The notes below the pieces were generated by a model. It searched no databases and was not told where the DNA came from. It saw only the letters and a program-made list of their open reading frames with translations. A DNA stretch of 63,799 nt, the filler included, from Octopus bimaculoides (Eukaryota), in NCBI RefSeq assembly GCF_001194135.2. It is 9 parts of 8 records of this genome, joined end to end, with 100 filler letters (N's around TTAATTAATTAA, not from the genome) between each part and the next. Parts side by side here need not be neighbours in the genome. Positions count along the whole stretch, not along the records: positions 1 to 8,524 come from NC_068993.1; 8 more parts are not named here. One strand, written 5' to 3'. The translations under genes were made by a program, and so were the position numbers. This document shows positions 1 to 8,258 of the stretch, one piece after another. The number at the start of each line of letters is the position of its first letter. The stretch's first letter is position 1.

Positions 1-138
1 TATATATATTTCCTGTGAAGTAGCTGTTCGGTAAAAAGGAAGCCTTCTTGTACTGGGTCGATTTCTTCCACTGAACTCAAGTCAATAGGCTACTGACTGA
101 GAGAAGCAAGACGATATAATATATATATACATACCTTC

Positions 139-171
<33 letters not shown>

Positions 172-302
172 TGTATGTATGTATGTATGTATGTATGTAT
201 GTATGTATGTACTGGCACTCTTTTAATTTTGACTCTCTATCTTCAGGAGCAGTTACCTCAATCCTTTCTATATTATTATTATTATTATTATTATTATTGT
301 TC

Positions 303-510
303 AGGTGTCGAGCTGACAGAATCGTTAGCACGCCGGGTAAAATGCTTAGGGCCTTTTTGACTGTCTTTAAGCTCAGAGTTCAAATCCCGCTGAGGTTGGC
401 TTTGACTTCCATCATTTTGGTGTCGATAAAAAAATAAGTACCAGTCAAACACTGATCAAACACTTACTCCTCCCCTCAAAATTGCTGGAATTGTGCCAAA
501 ATTTGAAACC
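303..510 (+). mobile_element. tRNA-derived SINE, family A (Meta-like central domain)
   Basis: GAGCTGRCAGAATCGTTAGCACGCCGGG head, GTTCAAATCCC B-box, GTCGATAAA..AAGTACCAG core, TTTGAAACC end; about 12 copies in window. Confidence 0.85.
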
Positions 511-985
511 ATTTTTGTCGTTATTTGCGGCTCATATTTTGGCAAACTGCAGTCTGCGCTTCGCATCAGAAATATCGTCTGACACGCACTGCCCAGTACT
601 AGTTTACCACCGTGGTTGGTGGAAGTTCTACCTTAGATATAGGGACCTAAAAGTGACTAAGTGCGATGACGTTACAGAAGAAATTCTAGATGCCGTTGAG
701 GACGAACTAGTTCTGGTCTGTTTCGAAGGATTTTCGGGCCTAAGACAACTTCACGTAGTTATAAGTGGAACTTCGTTATACCTCTGCAATAACTATATGT
801 CTGTTAAGTTCAATTTTCGCCGAGGCCAATTTTTGATTTTTGAATTTTTTGTTTGTTTTTGTTCTTTTGTTTTGTTTTAGTTTTTTTTTTTTACGTGGTC
901 ATATTTTTACAGCATCGATGAATTACTTTCACAATACAAACGTCAGAAAACAGCACTAATATCATTTTAAACGAATGATACTTAC

Positions 986-1072
986 CATTTAAATACCCTC
1001 GACTTATTGCCCGGGTACCTGATTTAACTTCATAATTTACATGCGGGTACGTGGCACGCATTATCACACATA
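986..1072 (-). CDS. Exon 3 of same gene (ICVIMRATYPHVNYEVKSGTRAISRGYLNG), DUF4773-like
   Basis: Acceptor TTTTCAG|, donor G|GTAAGT, 87 nt, phase 1-1, in frame with exon 2. Confidence 0.7.
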
Positions 1073-1477
1073 CTGAAAATATAAACAAGACAAAAGAACA
1101 AACTTTATTAGTATGAAAAACAAACTCTAAAGCATAAAGAATGGGTTTCTAATAAAATCCCAAGGGCAGCAGCTTCGGTGGGCATAGGATTTGTCATCAC
1201 CATTGGTCCTTGTAATTTACTTGTACTTTATTTTCATTAATACCGAAGGTATGAATGACAGGGTAGATGGCAGTGGGGCATGGACTGAGAACGTAAATGG
1301 AACAAATGCCACAAGTAATTTCTTCCGAAGCTCCAACGATTTCACCCTTCCAAACCCTATTACAAGGAATTATTCTCATTTCGTTATTATAACGAAATAT
1401 CAAAGCGGTGGCAAGTTAGCAGAATCATTAGAGCGCCGGTAAAACTGCTTTGCAATATTCTTTCTGGCCCTTTACTC

Positions 1478-1630
1478 TTTCGCCCCAACTTTCTCTCACA
1501 TTTTTCTTCCTGTTTCTTGAGAAACGCTGCAATGGATTGGCGTCCCGTCCAGCTGGGGATAACAACGTACGCCATAGAAACCGGGAAACCGGGCCCATGA
1601 GCCTGGCTGGGCTTGAAAAGGGCGCATAAA
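1478..1630 (+). mobile_element. SINE 3' portion (also at 44747-44900; related minus-strand piece 3845-3960)
   Basis: Closely similar to 44747-44900 (CTCTTTCGCCCCAACTTTCTCTCAC...CCATAGAAACCGGGAAACCGGGCCCATGAGCC). Confidence 0.75.
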
Positions 1631-1688
1631 AATTATAGATATGAGCACTTGTCTCTTATTATTATTTAATAAGTATTAATGTATTAAC

Positions 1689-2021
1689 AATGGCCCAGTG
1701 GTTAGGGCAGTGGACTCGCGGTCATAGGATCGCGGTTTCGATCACCTAAAAGCTCCACGAGGCCCCGGCAGGGGGTGGTGGCGAACCTTGCTGTACTCTT
1801 ACACCACAACTTTCTCTCACTCTTACTTCCTCTTTCTGTTGTGCCTGTAATTCAAAGGGCCAGCCTTGTCACACTGTGTCACGCTGAATATCCCCGAGAA
1901 CTACGTTAAGGGTACACATGTCTGTAGAGTGCTCAGTCACTTGCACGTTAATTTCACGAGCAGGCTGTTCCGTTGATCGGATCAACTGGAACCCTTGACA
2001 TCGTAAGCGACAGAGTGCCAA
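1689..2021 (+). mobile_element. tRNA-derived SINE, family C
   Basis: A-box TGGCCCAGTGGTTAGG, B-box GGTTTCGATC; 3' body shared with 6470-6743 and 18469-18790. Confidence 0.8.
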
Positions 2022-2104
2022 CATAATATTAACTTAGTGTGTATGCGGGGCAGAGTTCAAAGCGAATCTGCACCAAGCTGCTTCAAACTGTGTAGTTTAG
2101 CACC

Positions 2105-2118
2105 GTTGCCATAGCAAC
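2105..2118. promoter_or_regulatory. RFX X-box motif GTTGCCATAGCAAC
   Basis: 14-bp near-palindrome matching the GTTRCCATRGYAAC consensus, in intron 2. Confidence 0.45.
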
Positions 2119-2227
2119 TGTCCAGATATTTTTGATCAGACCTTATATGTTATCGAGGAAGATTACGCGTTGTAAATGAATAACAAATAATAATGACACA
2201 AAACAAAATAAAAATAAATCTACATAC

Positions 2228-2431
2228 TTTTGCTGGGAATCATATAAAGTTGAAAACAGCAGTTTCCTGTTGTATGATCCCAACTACATTTCATCGACGG
2301 CGCATGATATTTCACATTTATATTTGTATTTTCCAAGGGAAAATCAACTTTGGAATTTTGGATGAGCATTTCATCAACCTTGAGTTCTTCGACAATCTCC
2401 TCTAGATCATTAATCACTTCATCAGTTTTGC
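2228..2431 (-). CDS. Exon 2 of same gene (GKTDEVINDLEEIVEELK...MKCSWDHTTGNCCFQLYMIPSK)
   Basis: Acceptor TTTTCAG|, donor A|GTATGT, 204 nt, phase 1-1, open and in frame with exon 1; C-x7-CC motif. Confidence 0.75.
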
Positions 2432-2683
2432 CTGAAAATATTGTAAAATGCATTTATCAATTGCTTTAATATTTAATGTAAGAGATAATGCAGGAATTTG
2501 TTGATATGTTCTTCTCTTTATACACATTTATATTAATATTTTTTGATGAATGCATTTTTTTTTTACTATTGTTACGTTACAACAAGTTTCAACAAATTTT
2601 TATGAGTGCATATATGTACATGTGTGTGCGTGCGCATGTATGCGTATGTATGTATGTATGTATGTACTATGTATGTCTATATG

Positions 2684-2885
2684 GTCGAGGGCGTATCTTC
2701 TAGTGTTTAGGGTGTTGCAATCACGATCGCCAGACGTTGGTTCAATTCCTGGACCGGGTTATGCGATGTGTCTTTGAACAAAACATTTCATCTCACATTG
2801 ACCTGTGATCACTTCCAGACAGAACGAGTTGTACACCGTGCACCTGTTCAGGTAAGGTCGATCTGGTTGTTGGAAGGAGTTGGCA
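2684..2885 (+). mobile_element. Degenerate tRNA-derived CORE-like SINE
   Basis: GGTTCAATTCC B-box followed by TGTGTCTTTGAACAAAACA core-like segment. Confidence 0.55.
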
Positions 2886-3018
2886 CATACATTTTATCAT
2901 TATAAGCATATCATTTGTGCAAGAAATAGCAGAAAAGCCTTTGTTTTGTCCATGTATGTATGTATGTATGTATGCATGCATGTATGTATGTATGTATGTA
3001 TGTATGCATGCATGTATG

Positions 3019-3063
<45 letters not shown>

Positions 3064-3066
<3 letters not shown>

Positions 3067-3462
3067 TGCAGGCGTGGCTGTGTGGTAAGTAGCTTGCTTA
3101 CCAACCACATGGTTTCGGGTTCAGTCCCACTGCGTAGCACCTTGGGCAAGTGCCTTCTACCATAACCTCAAGCCGAGTAAAGTCTTGTGAGTGGATTTGG
3201 TAGATGGAAACTGAAAGAAGCCCATCGTATATATCTATGTATGCTTTTATTGAGTTAGTGTTTGTGTTCCCCCACAAACACACCATCGCTTGACATCTGA
3301 TGCTGGTGTGCTTACGACCCCCGTAACTTAGCGGTTCGGCCAAAGAGACAGATGAAATAAGTACTAAGCTTACAAAGAATAAGTCCTGGGATCGATATTT
3401 GTTCGACTAAAGGCAGTGCTCCAGCATGGCCGCAGTCAAATGACTGAACAAGTAAAAGAAAA
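3064..3462 (+). mobile_element. tRNA-derived CORE-like SINE, family B (OR1/OR2-like), full length
   Basis: GGCGTGGCTGTGTGGTAAG head, CACCTTGGGCAAGTG core, internal microsatellite, CCAGCATGGCCGCAGTCAAATGACTGAA tail. Confidence 0.85.
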
Positions 3463-4335
3463 GCGGTAAAAAAATAGTGTATGTTCTCTTTTGTTTTTAA
3501 TTGTCTAAATTCTTCCGCTGAAGAAGGAACTGGTTTTTTACGGTGATAGAAACCTGCATCGTTGAAATGCACATAACGAAAACAATGTCACATTTTAAAT
3601 TTGACAATAAATTCGCATATTTTCACTGTTCCACTTACAGACTGTATTGTATTGTGCGAATTAGTTCGTTGATTTCGTTTTCTGATTATTTACAAAACCA
3701 AATGTACCTAATATGATTGGTATAAATGTAAATTAGTAATTAGGGAAGAGGAATTGGACGTTTAGAAGCGAAATAGTTGACAATAGTTATCTTCTTTCTC
3801 ATTGATTTTCAAAGTAATATTCTCATCAGCAAGACAACTGACCTCTCTGGCGTTTTTTCTCGTGCCCTGGGCTCATATAGCCCAGTTACCCGGTTTCTAT
3901 CGGTGACACTCCCTCTGAATGGAATGTCAGTTCGTTCCAAGATCCAAGGCCAGGTACTTTGAGGAGAGGGTCAGTACTTTATTTTATTGACCACGAACGA
4001 AACGATGAAAGAAACAGCTGATTTGGTGGGATTTGATCTCGATGTGTAAAGAACCGGAAGAAATGCCACTTAGCAATTTGTTCGACGCTCTAACGATTCT
4101 ATGGGTTCACCTACACTAATTAGTTAACATACATGTATTCATATATTATATAAATGAGTTAAATATTATTTAATCCGAATCACACTGCCTGAACTTCGTT
4201 TGGACTTCAAGAATCACTCTACGAACCCCGTACGAAAATTATTTATAGTTCAACAATAAAGATAAATATATTTTCAAGGATTTCAGAATTCTCTATCATT
4301 CACTCTGCGCTTATGTTGGAACACCGCCTTCCACC

Positions 4336-4399
<64 letters not shown>

Positions 4400-4729
4400 A
4401 TAATCATAAATTGTATATATTCAAGGATCCGATTTCTTTCCCATTGTATCTTGATCTCCTATTTGATAAACTCACATACACGCGGGCGCGCAGACATACA
4501 CATACATAAACACACACATACACACACACACTCACGTGCACACTTACACGTACACACACACACGTGCATGTACACATACACATATATAAATATATATATA
4601 TATATTTATATATACATACACATATATAAATATATATATATATTTATATATACATACACATATATAAATATATATATATATTTATATACGCACACACGCA
4701 CACGCACACACACACACACACATATATAT

Positions 4730-4943
4730 TTCGTTTTGGGGTTTGGTTTACAAGATTCTTTATGTGAGTTCGTGTGTTGAAGCATATTCTGTTGTGTCTC
4801 GGAAGAGTCATTCTCTTTTGGTGCCTTATAATTTAACACACTCACCGGTAAAATTTCCACTTATTTTGAGTCAAAACTATTGAAAAGGTTGCAAGACGCA
4901 ACGAAAATTTTAGAAAAGTAAAGAAATAAGTGGAAATTTTACC
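4730..4943. mobile_element. Foldback/MITE-like element copy 1
   Basis: Perfect 20-bp inverted repeat 4847-4866/4924-4943; arm shared with 22556-22790. Confidence 0.65.
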
Positions 4944-5015
4944 ATGTATATGTGTATATTTTGGCTGTATGTATGTATGTATGTATGTATGTATGTATGT
5001 ATGCAGGTGTTTTTG

Positions 5016-5220
5016 TATCTGCGTTTGTCCTCCACCACTGCTTGACAAACTTTGTTGGTGTATTTATGTCACCTTAGCTTTCTGGTTCGGCAAAAGAAAA
5101 CAACAGAATAAGTAGAATTCGTAAAAAAATTTTAATACTGGGGTTCTATTCCATTGACTATAATTCTTCAAGCCGATGCCCCAGCATGGCCGCAGTCTAA
5201 TGACTGAAACAAGTAAAATT
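5016..5220 (+). mobile_element. SINE family B 3' half
   Basis: CCACCACTGCTTGACAA...CCAGCATGGCCGCAGTCTAATGACTGAAACAAGTAAAA. Confidence 0.75.
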
Positions 5221-5398
5221 TAAAAGATTCAAATACATATCTGTGTGAGTGTATGAACGTGTATGAATATATACATATTTATGTATCTATATTTTTGTGT
5301 AGCTATCTAACTCTCTCTATTTGCTTGTCTGCCTATATATAATAGATAGCTAATATGTATACATATCTATATTATGTTGTAAGAGATGAAACACTTAC

Positions 5399-5486
5399 CT
5401 TCGCTTATCTCCGGCGCCATATTCACCACAGCACATGTTCCTAAAGAGAACAGCAGGGCCAAGTAAAAAACTGTACTGGTCATCAT
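5399..5486 (-). CDS. Exon 1 of spliced secreted-protein gene (signal peptide MMTSTVFYLALLFSLGTCAVVNMAPEISE)
   Basis: ATG at 5486, 29 codons + 1 nt, hydrophobic leader, donor G|GTAAGT at 5398; TATA box about 115 bp upstream. Confidence 0.75.
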
Positions 5487-5601
5487 GATGGTAATGATTT
5501 CAATTTTCTATTCTCAAAATTCGTCACGGGATCGTTCGCTAATGAGAAAGAAGCTTCGGCCAAAGAGACGCGAATGGATAACATTTCGACGGAATCTTTC
5601 G

Positions 5602-5609
5602 TATTTATA
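5602..5609 (-). promoter_or_regulatory. TATA box (TATAAATA) of the secreted-protein gene
   Basis: Minus strand reads TATAAATA, with an initiator-like TCCATTC about 28 nt downstream and the ATG about 90 nt further. Confidence 0.55.
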
Positions 5610-5861
5610 ACGTTGGCCTACAAGTGGATATATGTTTCAAGTACAACAATACAAAAGGCTCAGGAACACCTATAAAAAGAAAATATTTAGGATAGGTCTC
5701 CTAAGCTTTGTTAATACATTTCCTAAAATACTAATTAAAAAGTTGAAACAAAATCAAAACAACACGGAAAAGAAAATGCGTTGAAGTATATTTCCTCTTC
5801 AGAGTTCAAAAGTTTGCTGTGATCAGCCTGAGTTCAAATTTGGTTCGACAAAGTTTTCTTA

Positions 5862-6100
5862 TTTCTTTATTGCCCACAAGGGGTTAAACATAGAGGGGAC
5901 AAACAAGGACAGACAAAGAGATTAAGTCGATTACATCGACCCCAGTGCGTAACTGGTACTTAATTTATAGTACCCCGAAAGGATGAAAGGCAAAGTCGAC
6001 CTCGGCGGAATTTGAACTCAGAACATAAAGACAGACAGACGAACTACCACTCAACATTTCGCCCGGCGTGCTAACGTTTCTGCCAGCTTCTCGCCGCCTT
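5862..6100 (-). mobile_element. SINE family A
   Basis: Reverse complement of the family A consensus. Confidence 0.85.
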
Positions 6101-6156
6101 GGTTCCATAAAGTTTTCTACTTATGAAGTATTGGTGTCGGTGATATTGTTGTTGCT

Positions 6157-6372
6157 AAGGCGGCGAGCTGGCAGAAACGTTAACACGTCGGGCGGAACGC
6201 TTTGCGGTATTTCGTCTGTCTTTACGTTCTGAGTTCAAATTTCGCCGAGGTCGACTTTGCCTTTCATTCTTTTGGGCTCGATTAATTAAGTACCAGTTGC
6301 GTACTGGGGTCGATCTAATCGACTGGCCTCCTCTCCCAAAATTTCAGATCTTGTACCTAGAATAGAAAAGAA
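6157..6372 (+). mobile_element. SINE family A
   Basis: AAGGCGGCGAGCTGGCAGAAACG...GTACCAGTTGCGTACTGGGGTCG...AATAGAAAAG. Confidence 0.9.
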
Positions 6373-6469
6373 TTGTTGTTGATGTTGTTACTGCTGCTCT
6401 TTTTGTTGTTGTGTCATCATCGTCGTCGTCGTCATCAACATCATCATTATCATCATCATTATCATCAGT

Positions 6470-6743
6470 GAAAGCGCGTGGCTTAGTGGTTAGGGTATTC
6501 GGCTCATGATCGTAAGGTTGTGAGTTCGATTCCCGGCGGTGCTTAGGCCAATGTTATCCATTTCATGTTGTGCCATCCACCCAACTGGCAAAAATTAGTT
6601 GTACCTGTGTTTCAAAGAGCCTGCTTTGTCCCCTTCTGTGTGATATTGAGAGCTACATTAAGGGTACGCGTGCTTGTGGTGTGATCAGCCACTTGCACAT
6701 TAATTTCAGAAGGAAAAGGATGTTCCGTTGATCGGATTAACTG
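6470..6743 (+). mobile_element. SINE family C
   Basis: GCGCGTGGCTTAGTGGTTAGGG A-box, GAGTTCGATTCCC B-box, shared 3' body. Confidence 0.8.
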
Positions 6744-7280
6744 CAAAATACAGGTATTGTGGTCGATTCGTTCGTCTAAAATTGTTCAATGTTGTGTCCC
6801 AGCATAATTGCAGTAGAGAGAACCAAATAAAAAATAAAGGATACCTGACTATCCCCCACTTTAAAGCATCTGGTTGTATATCCATGTTGGAAATAGTTTG
6901 TGTATTGCGCAAGTATGATATCTGTAGATGAGTCACTTCTTAAATACGCAAAAGTTCAGAACTGCAGTTATGCATGCAAATAACCTTCTGGCTTTACTTT
7001 GCAAATCAATATTCATAAAGATGACATTAGACTAGGCCAATAATACGAAAGAGGAAGCAAGATATATTCTGTTATGGGTTCGATATCCTTTAGTTCCTAT
7101 AGCAGCCCTGCATGCATTGTCGAAGACGGAGGTAGACGGAGGCAGACAGAGAAATGGTGTGTCACCAAGCCACGAGATTAGAAGTTCCGTAGTTAATAAT
7201 GTAAAAGAACCCAGAGAACTTCTTCGGAATTTCTTTGTACCTTTTTTTTATTTTAATTTTAGGACCTCTCTTTTACGGTT

Positions 7281-7381
7281 GATGAACTTAGATAGAATTA
7301 AGAGGAATTAAATTCATTAGTTTGAATCTCTTTAACAATTCAAAATAATGAATTTAATTCCTCTTAATTCCTCAGTTCATC
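7281..7381. repeat. About 100-nt near-perfect hairpin
   Basis: Perfect 25-bp inverted repeat 7295-7319/7346-7370 plus 7-bp inner and 8-bp outer stems. Confidence 0.85.
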
Positions 7382-7707
7382 TAATTGTATTAATTTATCG
7401 CTAATTTTCATTAAAAAAACCTTTATCTATTTTTTTTTTTTTGATATTCAATGTGCATTTTCGCTTTTTTCTTCTTATTTTCCATANNNNNNNNNNNNNN
7501 NNNNNNNNNNNNNNNNNNNNNNNNNNNNNNNNNNNNNNNNNNNNNNNNNNNNNNNNNNNNNNNNNNNNNNNNNNNNNNNNNNNNNNNNNNNNNNNNNNNN
7601 NNNNNNNNNNNNNNNNNNNNNNNNNNNNNNNNNNNNNNNNNNNNNNNNNNNNNNNNNNNNNNNNNNNNNNNNNNNNNNNNNNNNNNNNNNNNNNNNNNNN
7701 NNNNNNN

Positions 7708-8067: not shown

Positions 8068-8258
8068 GTTGGCAGACTCGTTAGTGCTACGGACGAGGTG
8101 CTGTATAAGAATTTCTTCCGGATCTCTACATTCGAAGTTCAAATTCCACCGTCACTGACTTTGCCTTTCATCGTTTTGGAACCGATAAAATAAATACCAG
8201 TCGAGTACTGTGATCAATATTATCGTTTAACTCTGGAATTGTGTCGAAATTTGAAACC
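8068..8258 (+). mobile_element. SINE family A, diverged
   Basis: GTTCAAATTCC, TTTGCCTTTCATC, ATAAATACCAG, TTTGAAACC. Confidence 0.7.

Follow-up and report, generated by a model that had tools for sequence, protein, structure and literature searches.

A four-exon gene of Octopus bimaculoides predicted to encode a secreted protein of a divergent cephalopod DUF4773 branch

Our analysis of a 63,799-nucleotide stretch of Octopus bimaculoides DNA ('the window') shows that positions 5609-1, read on the minus strand, carry exons 1-3 of LOC106876290 together with its promoter region and a portion of intron 3. We consider it highly probable that LOC106876290 has four exons and encodes a secreted protein of 197 residues, which belongs to a divergent cephalopod branch of DUF4773 and to a tandem cluster of fast-diverging paralogues. 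The gene structure and the identity to the annotated protein are shown, and the locus, already known from public annotation, is a real but ordinary gene. Read in the direction of transcription, its features are:

Candidate TATA box TATAAATA: 5602..5609, minus strand; read directly, 123 nt upstream of the ATG
Minimum 5' UTR: 5487..5554, minus strand; collinear with the genome, from cDNA contig L005
Exon 1, coding part: 5399..5486, minus strand, 88 nt; codes for Met1-Glu29 and for the first base of codon 30
Predicted signal peptide MMTSTVFYLALLFSLGTCA: within exon 1 (5399..5486, minus strand); ∼19 residues, by sequence features
Intron 1: 2432..5398, minus strand, 2967 nt, phase 1; GT at 5398-5397, AG at 2433-2432
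Exon 2: 2228..2431, minus strand, 204 nt; encodes the acidic, predicted helical linker and the beginning of the cysteine-rich domain (C78, W80, C87, C88)
Intron 2: 1073..2227, minus strand, 1155 nt, phase 1; GT at 2227-2226, AG at 1074-1073
Exon 3: 986..1072, minus strand, 87 nt, phase 1-1; ICVIMRATYPHVNYEVKSGTRAISRGYLN, contains C99; skippable cassette exon
Intron 3, first 985 nt: 1..985, minus strand; donor GTAAGT at 985-980, with the last exon outside the window

The ATG of exon 1 (5486-5484) follows two in-frame stops, located 7 and 9 codons before it, and the exon, which is identical to residues 1-29 of XP_014780271.1, ends at a GTAAGT donor. Cumulative coding lengths of 88, 292 and 379 nt place every intron in phase 1, exons 1-3 join into 126 codons with 0 stops, and positions 1-7486 are uninterrupted by runs of N. 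The initial annotation had proposed just such a gene from the sequence by eye (three exons with GT-AG sites, all phase 1, 126 stop-free codons within one assembly piece), and its coordinates and phases turn out to be exact. Over its full 126 residues, the joined peptide shows 100% identity to XP_014780271.1/UniProt A0A0L8GLC6 (LOC106876290, OCBIM_22032142mg; 197 aa; residues 1-126), so that the spliced gene it had claimed matches the NCBI/UniProt entry, and a four-exon model with the same phases exactly reproduces the annotated proteins in three species, including O. sinensis and O. vulgaris. Taken together, this identity and the shared structure imply that the spliced gene is not a product of chance. 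The window is 100% identical to CM046613.1 in reverse orientation, where the locus falls at 8.326-8.334 Mb, and the public O. bimaculoides entry thus represents the same gene without any sequence difference, the window lacking only exon 4 (residues 127-197). In this sense the by-eye splicing was accurate, reproducing the public gene model base for base. The remark that the gene had not been assembled by the ORF track is correct insofar as an ORF lister cannot splice, but the gene is present in public annotation. Intron 1 is dense in microsatellites and dispersed repeats, and tRNA and Rfam scans of the window were empty.

The gene continues past the window: a donor site closes exon 3, and exon 4 is found beyond position 1. 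Residues 127-197 have no tblastn match in the window; exon 4, which encodes them together with four more cysteines, is located at L001 16775-16989, ∼1.29 kb beyond window position 1. Hence, the initially proposed extent covers the first three of four exons, but the gene does not end there, and while residues 1-126 of the proposed peptide are correct, its final Gly had been read from intron 3, the true residue 127 being Asp (G|AT). Exon 3 can be skipped: LOC115227066 of O. sinensis also has an annotated isoform (X2; P0004) without exactly the 29 codons homologous to this exon.

At the 5' end, TATAAATA is a plausible candidate for a TATA box. gTATAAATAcgaaagattccgtc likewise occurs in O. sinensis and O. 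vulgaris, with AATAAAT in the tandem paralogue, and the octamer has 8 occurrences in the window. The 320 nt upstream are 91.5% identical between species, which resembles the value for introns (90.5-91.5%), so that promoter conservation is uninformative with respect to the TATA box; among tandem paralogues, promoter identity (71%) is likewise no better than that of intron flanks (75-79%). The tissue-restricted expression initially suggested by the TATA-type promoter is thus not established. The minimum 5' UTR is taken from cDNA contig L005, a family member that derives from a paralogue or orthologue rather than from this exact gene, and from a run labelled mealybug. This contig begins 68 nt upstream of the ATG, its nucleotides 1-156 are 95.5% identical to the 5' stretch plus exon 1 and, being spliced, it breaks exactly at the exon 1 donor.

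The encoded protein would begin with a signal peptide of ∼19 residues, followed by an acidic helical linker (∼50 residues) and an all-β domain with disulfide bonds (∼110 residues). Hydrophobicity over 11-residue windows peaks for those that begin at residues 5-11. A hydrophobic core spans residues 5-16, and a T-C-A motif supplies the small residues of the -3/-1 rule, both being shared by 15 family members. These are features expected of a cleavable signal peptide, in keeping with the signal-peptide exon that had been proposed. The protein has no second hydrophobic segment and is predicted to be secreted. An AlphaFold model computed with 15 sequences (one with four sequences had a mean pLDDT of 46.6 and was unusable) exhibits pLDDT values of 80-95 over residues 70-185, where nine consecutive strands, starting from residue 75, form an all-β arrangement; a helix at residues 29-54 is of low confidence. 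The β fold of the domain is thus confidently predicted by the model.

One may ask whether the acidic linker (∼20-72) is a propeptide, removed on maturation in order to release the β domain as the active product. In contrast to the nearly neutral domain, the linker is strongly acidic, with 13 D/E versus 4 K/R in residues 20-72; the model presents it as a separate, low-confidence helix; its helix and charge pattern (E..LE..V..L.VD) is kept across the family; and in several paralogues, the first cysteine is preceded by an Arg at a distance of two or three residues (PRM-x-C). However, this Arg is missing in the LOC106876290 protein (APSMKC), where no dibasic or furin-type site was found anywhere, and since no dibasic or otherwise conserved cleavage site is present, the idea is unsupported. 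We regard such processing as rather improbable.

LOC106876290 belongs to a tandem family (LOC106876290/LOC115227066/LOC115227065) with a common four-exon layout, in which the three introns are all in phase 1 and occupy homologous positions. A paralogue of 183 aa lies 3.9 kb downstream, an arrangement which is the same in O. sinensis (3.9-4 kb), P0008 is ∼27 kb away, and the paralogues of O. vulgaris fall within ∼200 kb on one chromosome. The syntenic orthologue LOC115227066 (XP_029653858.1) from O. sinensis has the same four exons, the same phases and the same 183-aa neighbour; with 74% identity, it differs by one codon deleted in exon 2 and by 62 non-synonymous versus 15 synonymous differences. 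Comparison with this orthologue yields dN 0.145, dS 0.141 and omega 1.02 (bootstrap 0.61-1.82), at an intron identity of ∼91%. LOC106876290 is thus near-neutral between octopus species, yet its reading frame, cysteines and splice sites are kept.

Such a rate raises the question of whether the locus is a decaying or functionless tandem duplicate that drifts neutrally and makes no useful protein. An omega of ∼1 is also what a decaying gene is expected to show, dN equals or exceeds the intron divergence of ∼9-10%, and the promoter is conserved no more than the introns. Nonetheless, although the two species diverge by ∼14% per site, neither has lost the 197/196-codon frame, a splice site or any of the six cysteines found throughout the family, and both have kept the syntenic pair. 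Against the O. vulgaris paralogue, omega drops to 0.66, indicating long-term constraint, and a family member has been detected as a protein in mucus. Furthermore, secreted proteins at an interface usually mix a conserved core with a diversifying surface, which likewise speaks against decay. We therefore judge decay very unlikely, and retain the reading of an intact, fast-diverging member of a tandem family.

The assignment to DUF4773 rests on intermediate sequences, since the Pfam model PF15998 (gathering cut-off 27 bits) itself gives no match on the LOC106876290 protein: a Pfam scan of the 126-residue joined peptide, like that of full-length P0001, P0002, P0003 and P0005, returned no PF15998 match at E ≤ 10, and other Pfam matches (DUF1958, DUF7479, CBF_beta) are sub-threshold noise. 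In a search of 1.84 billion proteins, a profile of four octopus sequences (A1) matches P0016 at E 6.5e-7 and P0019 at 3.8e-4. Together with P0021, these squid/cuttlefish-type (decapodiform) proteins score above the cut-off (37.3, 33.3 and 32.4 bits for P0016, P0019 and P0021, respectively) and cover nearly the full PF15998 model (positions 2-112 of 118), and three more family members give sub-threshold matches to the same region. In a profile-profile comparison, hhalign aligns A1 with A3 at 96.7% probability (E 3.7e-10) over 117 columns, residues 73-189, with the cysteines in register. Invariant in the alignment are C78, W80, C87, C160, G177 and C178. The window encodes C78-x8-C87C88-x10-C99V100, and exon 4 contributes C160 and G177-C178, the counterparts in P0016 being C110, C119C120, C133L, C194 and G211-C212. 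The conserved cysteine framework of PF15998 presumably extends to a C(V/L) that follows the CC pair, as in the Pfam description. Transitive membership in DUF4773, via proteins above the cut-off, is thus supported at the level of sequence.

Accordingly, the DUF4773 likeness that had been suspected holds by UniProt name (A0A0L8GLC6 is already named 'DUF4773 domain-containing protein'), by transitive homology and by the hhalign alignment, but not by a direct match to PF15998. Residues 77-126, the part encoded in the window, match the domain's first half, as had been suggested, while the spacing given as C-x7-CC is actually C-x8-CC. It appears very unlikely that these proteins form a cephalopod-only cysteine-rich family unrelated to DUF4773, with the UniProt name and the profile matches owed only to cysteine pattern and composition: the LOC106876290 protein and its octopus relatives do lack a PF15998 match, the homologues found are all cephalopod (a word-indexed profile search with 15 sequences returned no insect or bivalve DUF4773) and the decapodiform passes are modest at 32-37 bits versus 27, but three independent proteins above a curated threshold, the further sub-threshold members and the register of cysteines over 117 columns weigh against it.

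As regards function, a study of skin mucus from O. vulgaris quantified a protein group under the label A0A0L8GLC6/OCBIM_22032142mg (PMC11431876, Supplementary Data S4); senescent animals had less of it, the ratios being 0.142 and 0.455 (PMC11431876). This label has probably been carried over from a relative with 55-74% identity, and presence of the O. bimaculoides orthologue in mucus would be expected by analogy. In the available text of the supplements, no tryptic peptides of the O. vulgaris relatives were found. The N-terminal 'peptide' listed in the supplement of that study (PMC11431876) is an in-silico digest and provides no evidence of an uncleaved signal peptide. Elsewhere, among the upregulated transcripts of secreting locust pleuropodia, that of another DUF4773 protein ranks third in abundance (PMC6966819), and yet another DUF4773 protein is a marker of an oyster haemocyte cluster (PMC12064177). 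A main-text literature search on the gene identifiers found no mention.

As its most likely mode of action, the LOC106876290 protein would leave epithelial or glandular cells by the secretory pathway and enter an extracellular fluid, for instance skin mucus, where its compact, disulfide-stabilised β domain might act as a binding module at the interface between animal and environment, in barrier or defence. An enzyme appears unlikely. Foldseek searches of the PDB (best E 0.2, TM below 0.3) and of viral models (best E 0.005, TM below 0.3) gave nothing significant, and a profile search of PDB sequences gave no match; as none of these searches returned a structural or sequence relative with known function, a role in binding or defence is a conjecture. 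It is tempting to speculate, although we would not expect it to be so, that the cephalopod DUF4773 branch constitutes a tandemly expanding, diversifying set of recognition or defence proteins of skin mucus, in which the near-neutral rate hides positively selected surface sites and the β fold is one without a solved relative. If true, it would represent a molluscan counterpart of the fast-evolving mucosal immune effectors and provide a first function for DUF4773, for which, to our knowledge, neither function nor structure has been described. The present locus contributes an all-β model of high confidence that lacks any solved relative, as well as a connection to the skin mucus of octopuses; it also adds a cephalopod branch, arranged in tandem and evolving fast, which escapes the Pfam model. 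The DUF4773 family is hence a reasonable candidate for studies of mucosal or secretory function, a modest gain that will not surprise the specialist.

Comparison with known systems places the protein as follows. Up-and-down β-barrel ligand binders (fatty-acid-binding proteins and avidins), which are the top, non-significant Foldseek matches, are likewise small domains with an antiparallel meander of 8-10 consecutive strands; however, at E values of at least 0.2, TM 0.17-0.29 and r.m.s.d. above 7 Å, the Foldseek comparison offers no evidence of kinship with them, or of a barrel. With PF15998, a domain of secreted proteins from invertebrates, the LOC106876290 protein shares a domain length of ∼105-110 residues and the cysteine framework C-x8-CC-x10-C(V/L)...C...GC, in register with the members above threshold, and its predicted N-terminal signal peptide would be a further likeness; on the Pfam model itself, it falls below any reportable score. 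Within the cephalopod branch, decapodiform members have a cysteine pair (C169/C178 of P0016) that is absent from octopus members, whereas the orthologue pair of O. bimaculoides and O. sinensis carries an extra pair of its own, C182/C188.

Over residues 1-126, the 197-residue Octopus bimaculoides protein XP_014780271.1 (LOC106876290) and the joined peptide are 100% identical; the protein is UniProt entry A0A0L8GLC6 (OCBIM_22032142mg), named there 'DUF4773 domain-containing protein'. LOC106876290 is thus an already annotated, uncharacterised gene; the observation made in the initial annotation is confirmed and its interpretation supported. The window matches chromosome record CM046613.1 (assembly GCA_001194135.2) at 100% in reverse orientation, and the exons, GT-AG sites, phase 1 and the 126 stop-free codons of joined exons 1-3 are exactly those initially proposed, read on the minus strand.

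Features of LOC106876290 and its upstream region (window positions)
5486..5399, minus strand: exon 1, 88 nt, ATG at 5486-5484
2431..2228, minus strand: exon 2, 204 nt
1072..986, minus strand: exon 3, 87 nt, phase 1-1
~1.29 kb past window position 1: exon 4, 215 nt including stop, residues 127-197, phase-1 join G/AT (Asp127)
7487-7707: 221 N, an assembly gap of the chromosome record itself; ~1.9 kb further upstream than the candidate TATA box

Cumulative exon lengths of 88, 292 and 379 nt place all introns in phase 1, the acceptors of the window exons all read ...TTTTCAG and the donors GTAAGT or GTATGT, in-frame TAG and TGA stops lie 7 and 9 codons upstream of the ATG, and the sole assembly gap near the gene sits upstream of the TATA candidate and of all exons. 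Exon 4 is not in the window, the gene being cut off by the window edge. Because exon 4 joins as G/AT, the last residue initially given, 'G', is the product of reading into intron 3, the true residue 127 being Asp; likewise, the 'C-x7-CC' spacing has to be corrected to C-x8-CC.

The four-exon, all-phase-1 model yields exactly the proteins annotated for an O. vulgaris paralogue and for the syntenic O. sinensis gene LOC115227066, whose product is 74% identical to the O. bimaculoides protein. Moreover, a 927-nt cDNA (L005; Logan contig SRR16213284_24248) encodes an uninterrupted 201-residue family member, and its nt 1-156 are 95.5% identical to the window 5' UTR and exon 1, the match breaking off precisely at the donor of exon 1 (window 5399) and the 5' UTR being collinear with the genome over 68 nt upstream of the ATG. 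L005 provides transcript-level support for splicing in the family, not for LOC106876290 itself. Since its exon 1 resembles LOC106876290 and its exons 2-4 resemble other paralogues, L005 may be an assembly chimera; its 3' end carries an Illumina adapter. The source SRA run is given as Planococcus ficus (mealybug, Mexico; PMC13340311), and the presence of an octopus-family cDNA there likely reflects cross-sample contamination from an octopus library.

All three introns being of phase 1, every internal exon is symmetric, and the 87-nt exon 3 (1072-986) represents a skippable cassette, given that exactly its 29 codons are missing from O. sinensis isoform X2. Without the exon 3 homologue, C99 and some three of the predicted strands are gone, and the conserved cysteines that are left are odd in number. 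In the divergent 325-residue family protein P0012, residues ~245-325 form the beginning of a second domain copy (C-x-W...G-x-C) after an acidic spacer, which suggests an internal duplication that would fit symmetric phase-1 exons.

The candidate TATA octamer TATAAATA (5609-5602) lies 123 nt upstream of the ATG; O. sinensis and O. vulgaris carry it at the equivalent position, and the tandem paralogue has AATAAAT. Eight copies of the octamer occur across the window, and four of the five on the minus strand are inside AT-rich repeats. The upstream 320 nt, 91.5% identical between species, are not better conserved than introns, and the same holds between paralogues (promoter 71%, intron flanks 75-79%). 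A start site ~30 nt past the candidate TATA would agree with the cDNA, whose 5' end lies at least 68 nt before the ATG; these data do not establish the tissue-restricted expression that was initially suggested. The introns are microsatellite-dense, and dispersed repeat copies (72-93% identical) are located in introns and the upstream region.

Repeats in and around LOC106876290 (window positions)
142-211: (TATG)17 microsatellite
2952-3064: (ATGT)27 then (TA)20 microsatellite
4339-4398: (TG)30 microsatellite
4574-4688: 38-nt unit, three copies
4966-5003: (TGTA)9 microsatellite
311-454 and 5943-6088: dispersed pair, inverted
1838-1991 and 6598-6746: dispersed pair, inverted
3417-3457 and 5177-5218: dispersed pair
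6209-6321 and 8111-8225: dispersed pair

The O. sinensis locus holds further dispersed copies, as does the stretch between the two tandem genes (genomic locus L001, 19,900-20,540). A SINE-like nature is probable for these repeats, but scans for tRNA genes and Rfam families gave no match.

Residues 1-19 form a hydrophobic, family-conserved segment resembling a signal peptide (TVFYLALLFSLG); the T-C-A after it agrees with the -3/-1 rule, and no second hydrophobic segment was found in the 197-residue protein. The predicted mature protein comprises 178 residues (pI 5.6) with eight cysteines (C78, C87, C88 and C99 encoded in the window; C160, C178, C182 and C188 in exon 4) and one N-glycosylation sequon, N189. 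In residues 20-72, acidic side chains strongly prevail (13 D/E versus 4 K/R), and the AlphaFold model shows this segment as a low-confidence helix; sequence inspection revealed no dibasic site anywhere in the protein, and no cleavage site that would support the propeptide reading of this segment was found. Residues ~73-185 constitute the cysteine-bearing domain, and AlphaFold, using a 15-sequence alignment, predicts nine successive beta strands with pLDDT 80-95 over residues 70-185. Foldseek against the PDB found no relative (best E 0.2, TM < 0.3), nor did a profile search of PDB sequences or Foldseek of viral models. The top, non-significant Foldseek matches are up-and-down beta barrels (FABP, avidins), which may at most serve as a lead.

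The proposed DUF4773 label finds no direct Pfam match and is upheld indirectly, by homology via Pfam-positive relatives. Even with the limit set at E <= 10, PF15998 hit neither the window peptide nor any of four octopus proteins in full length. A profile of four octopus sequences retrieved only 13 matches from 1.84 billion representative proteins, all of common architecture, including the squid/cuttlefish-type proteins P0016 (E 6.5e-7; nearest named relative from the cuttlefish Acanthosepion pharaonis) and P0019 (3.8e-4). Above the PF15998 gathering cut-off of 27 bits, P0016, P0019 and a further match, the likewise squid/cuttlefish-type P0021, score 37.3, 33.3 and 32.4 bits, covering model positions 2-112 of 118; three further family proteins (P0022, P0011, P0015) match below threshold. 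When the octopus set is aligned profile to profile with the three Pfam-positive proteins, residues 73-189 match at 96.7% probability (E 3.7e-10) and the cysteines fall in register; C78, W80, C87, C160, G177 and C178 are invariant in 15/15 family members. Taken together, the failed direct and the successful indirect test mark the LOC106876290 protein, at the level of sequence, as a divergent DUF4773 superfamily member missed by the current Pfam model, and the window part is, as initially guessed, the first half of the domain.

A 183-residue paralogue begins 3.9 kb downstream on the same strand, an arrangement found likewise in O. sinensis; a third, P0008, is ~27 kb away on the opposite strand, and in O. 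vulgaris divergent members lie within ~200 kb of one chromosome. Comparison of the O. bimaculoides and O. sinensis orthologues yields dN 0.145, dS 0.141 and omega 1.02 (bootstrap 0.61-1.82; 62 non-synonymous and 15 synonymous differences), intron identity being 90.5-91.5%; omega versus the O. vulgaris paralogue is 0.66. Despite an omega of ~1, the reading frame, every splice site and the full set of cysteines are kept, a pattern that a fast-evolving secreted protein would fit better than a pseudogene, with relaxed and diversifying selection not separable with these data.

Several public models of family members are affected by artefacts. The 133-residue model of the O. bimaculoides paralogue P0008 (L006 2001-5838 = CM046613.1 8,295,501-8,299,338, + strand) ends ...GYLNSKYHSFK, where translation runs past the donor of exon 3 into intron sequence (window equivalent GYLNGKYHSFK); hence this model is truncated and its last exon missing. 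The 342-residue O. vulgaris protein P0006 (CAI9731747) fuses two adjacent tandem genes, and P0009 (163 residues; L001 ~24366 onward) models the 183-residue neighbour without its signal-peptide exon.

To our knowledge, no DUF4773 member has a known function. Proteomics of skin mucus from O. vulgaris quantified a protein group labelled A0A0L8GLC6/OCBIM_22032142mg (PMC11431876, Supplementary Data S4), at lower levels in senescent animals (ratios 0.142 and 0.455), the label probably being transferred from an O. vulgaris relative. An N-terminal peptide in these data was rejected as an observed peptide, being an in-silico digest. The statements on gene and family are well supported; for the LOC106876290 protein we infer the role of a beta-domain protein, stabilised by disulfides and secreted as part of epithelial secretions, which would probably act as a binding module at the interface between animal and environment. 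Elsewhere, secreting locust pleuropodia have a DUF4773 transcript among their most abundant ones (PMC6966819), and one cluster of oyster haemocytes has a DUF4773 gene as a marker (PMC12064177).
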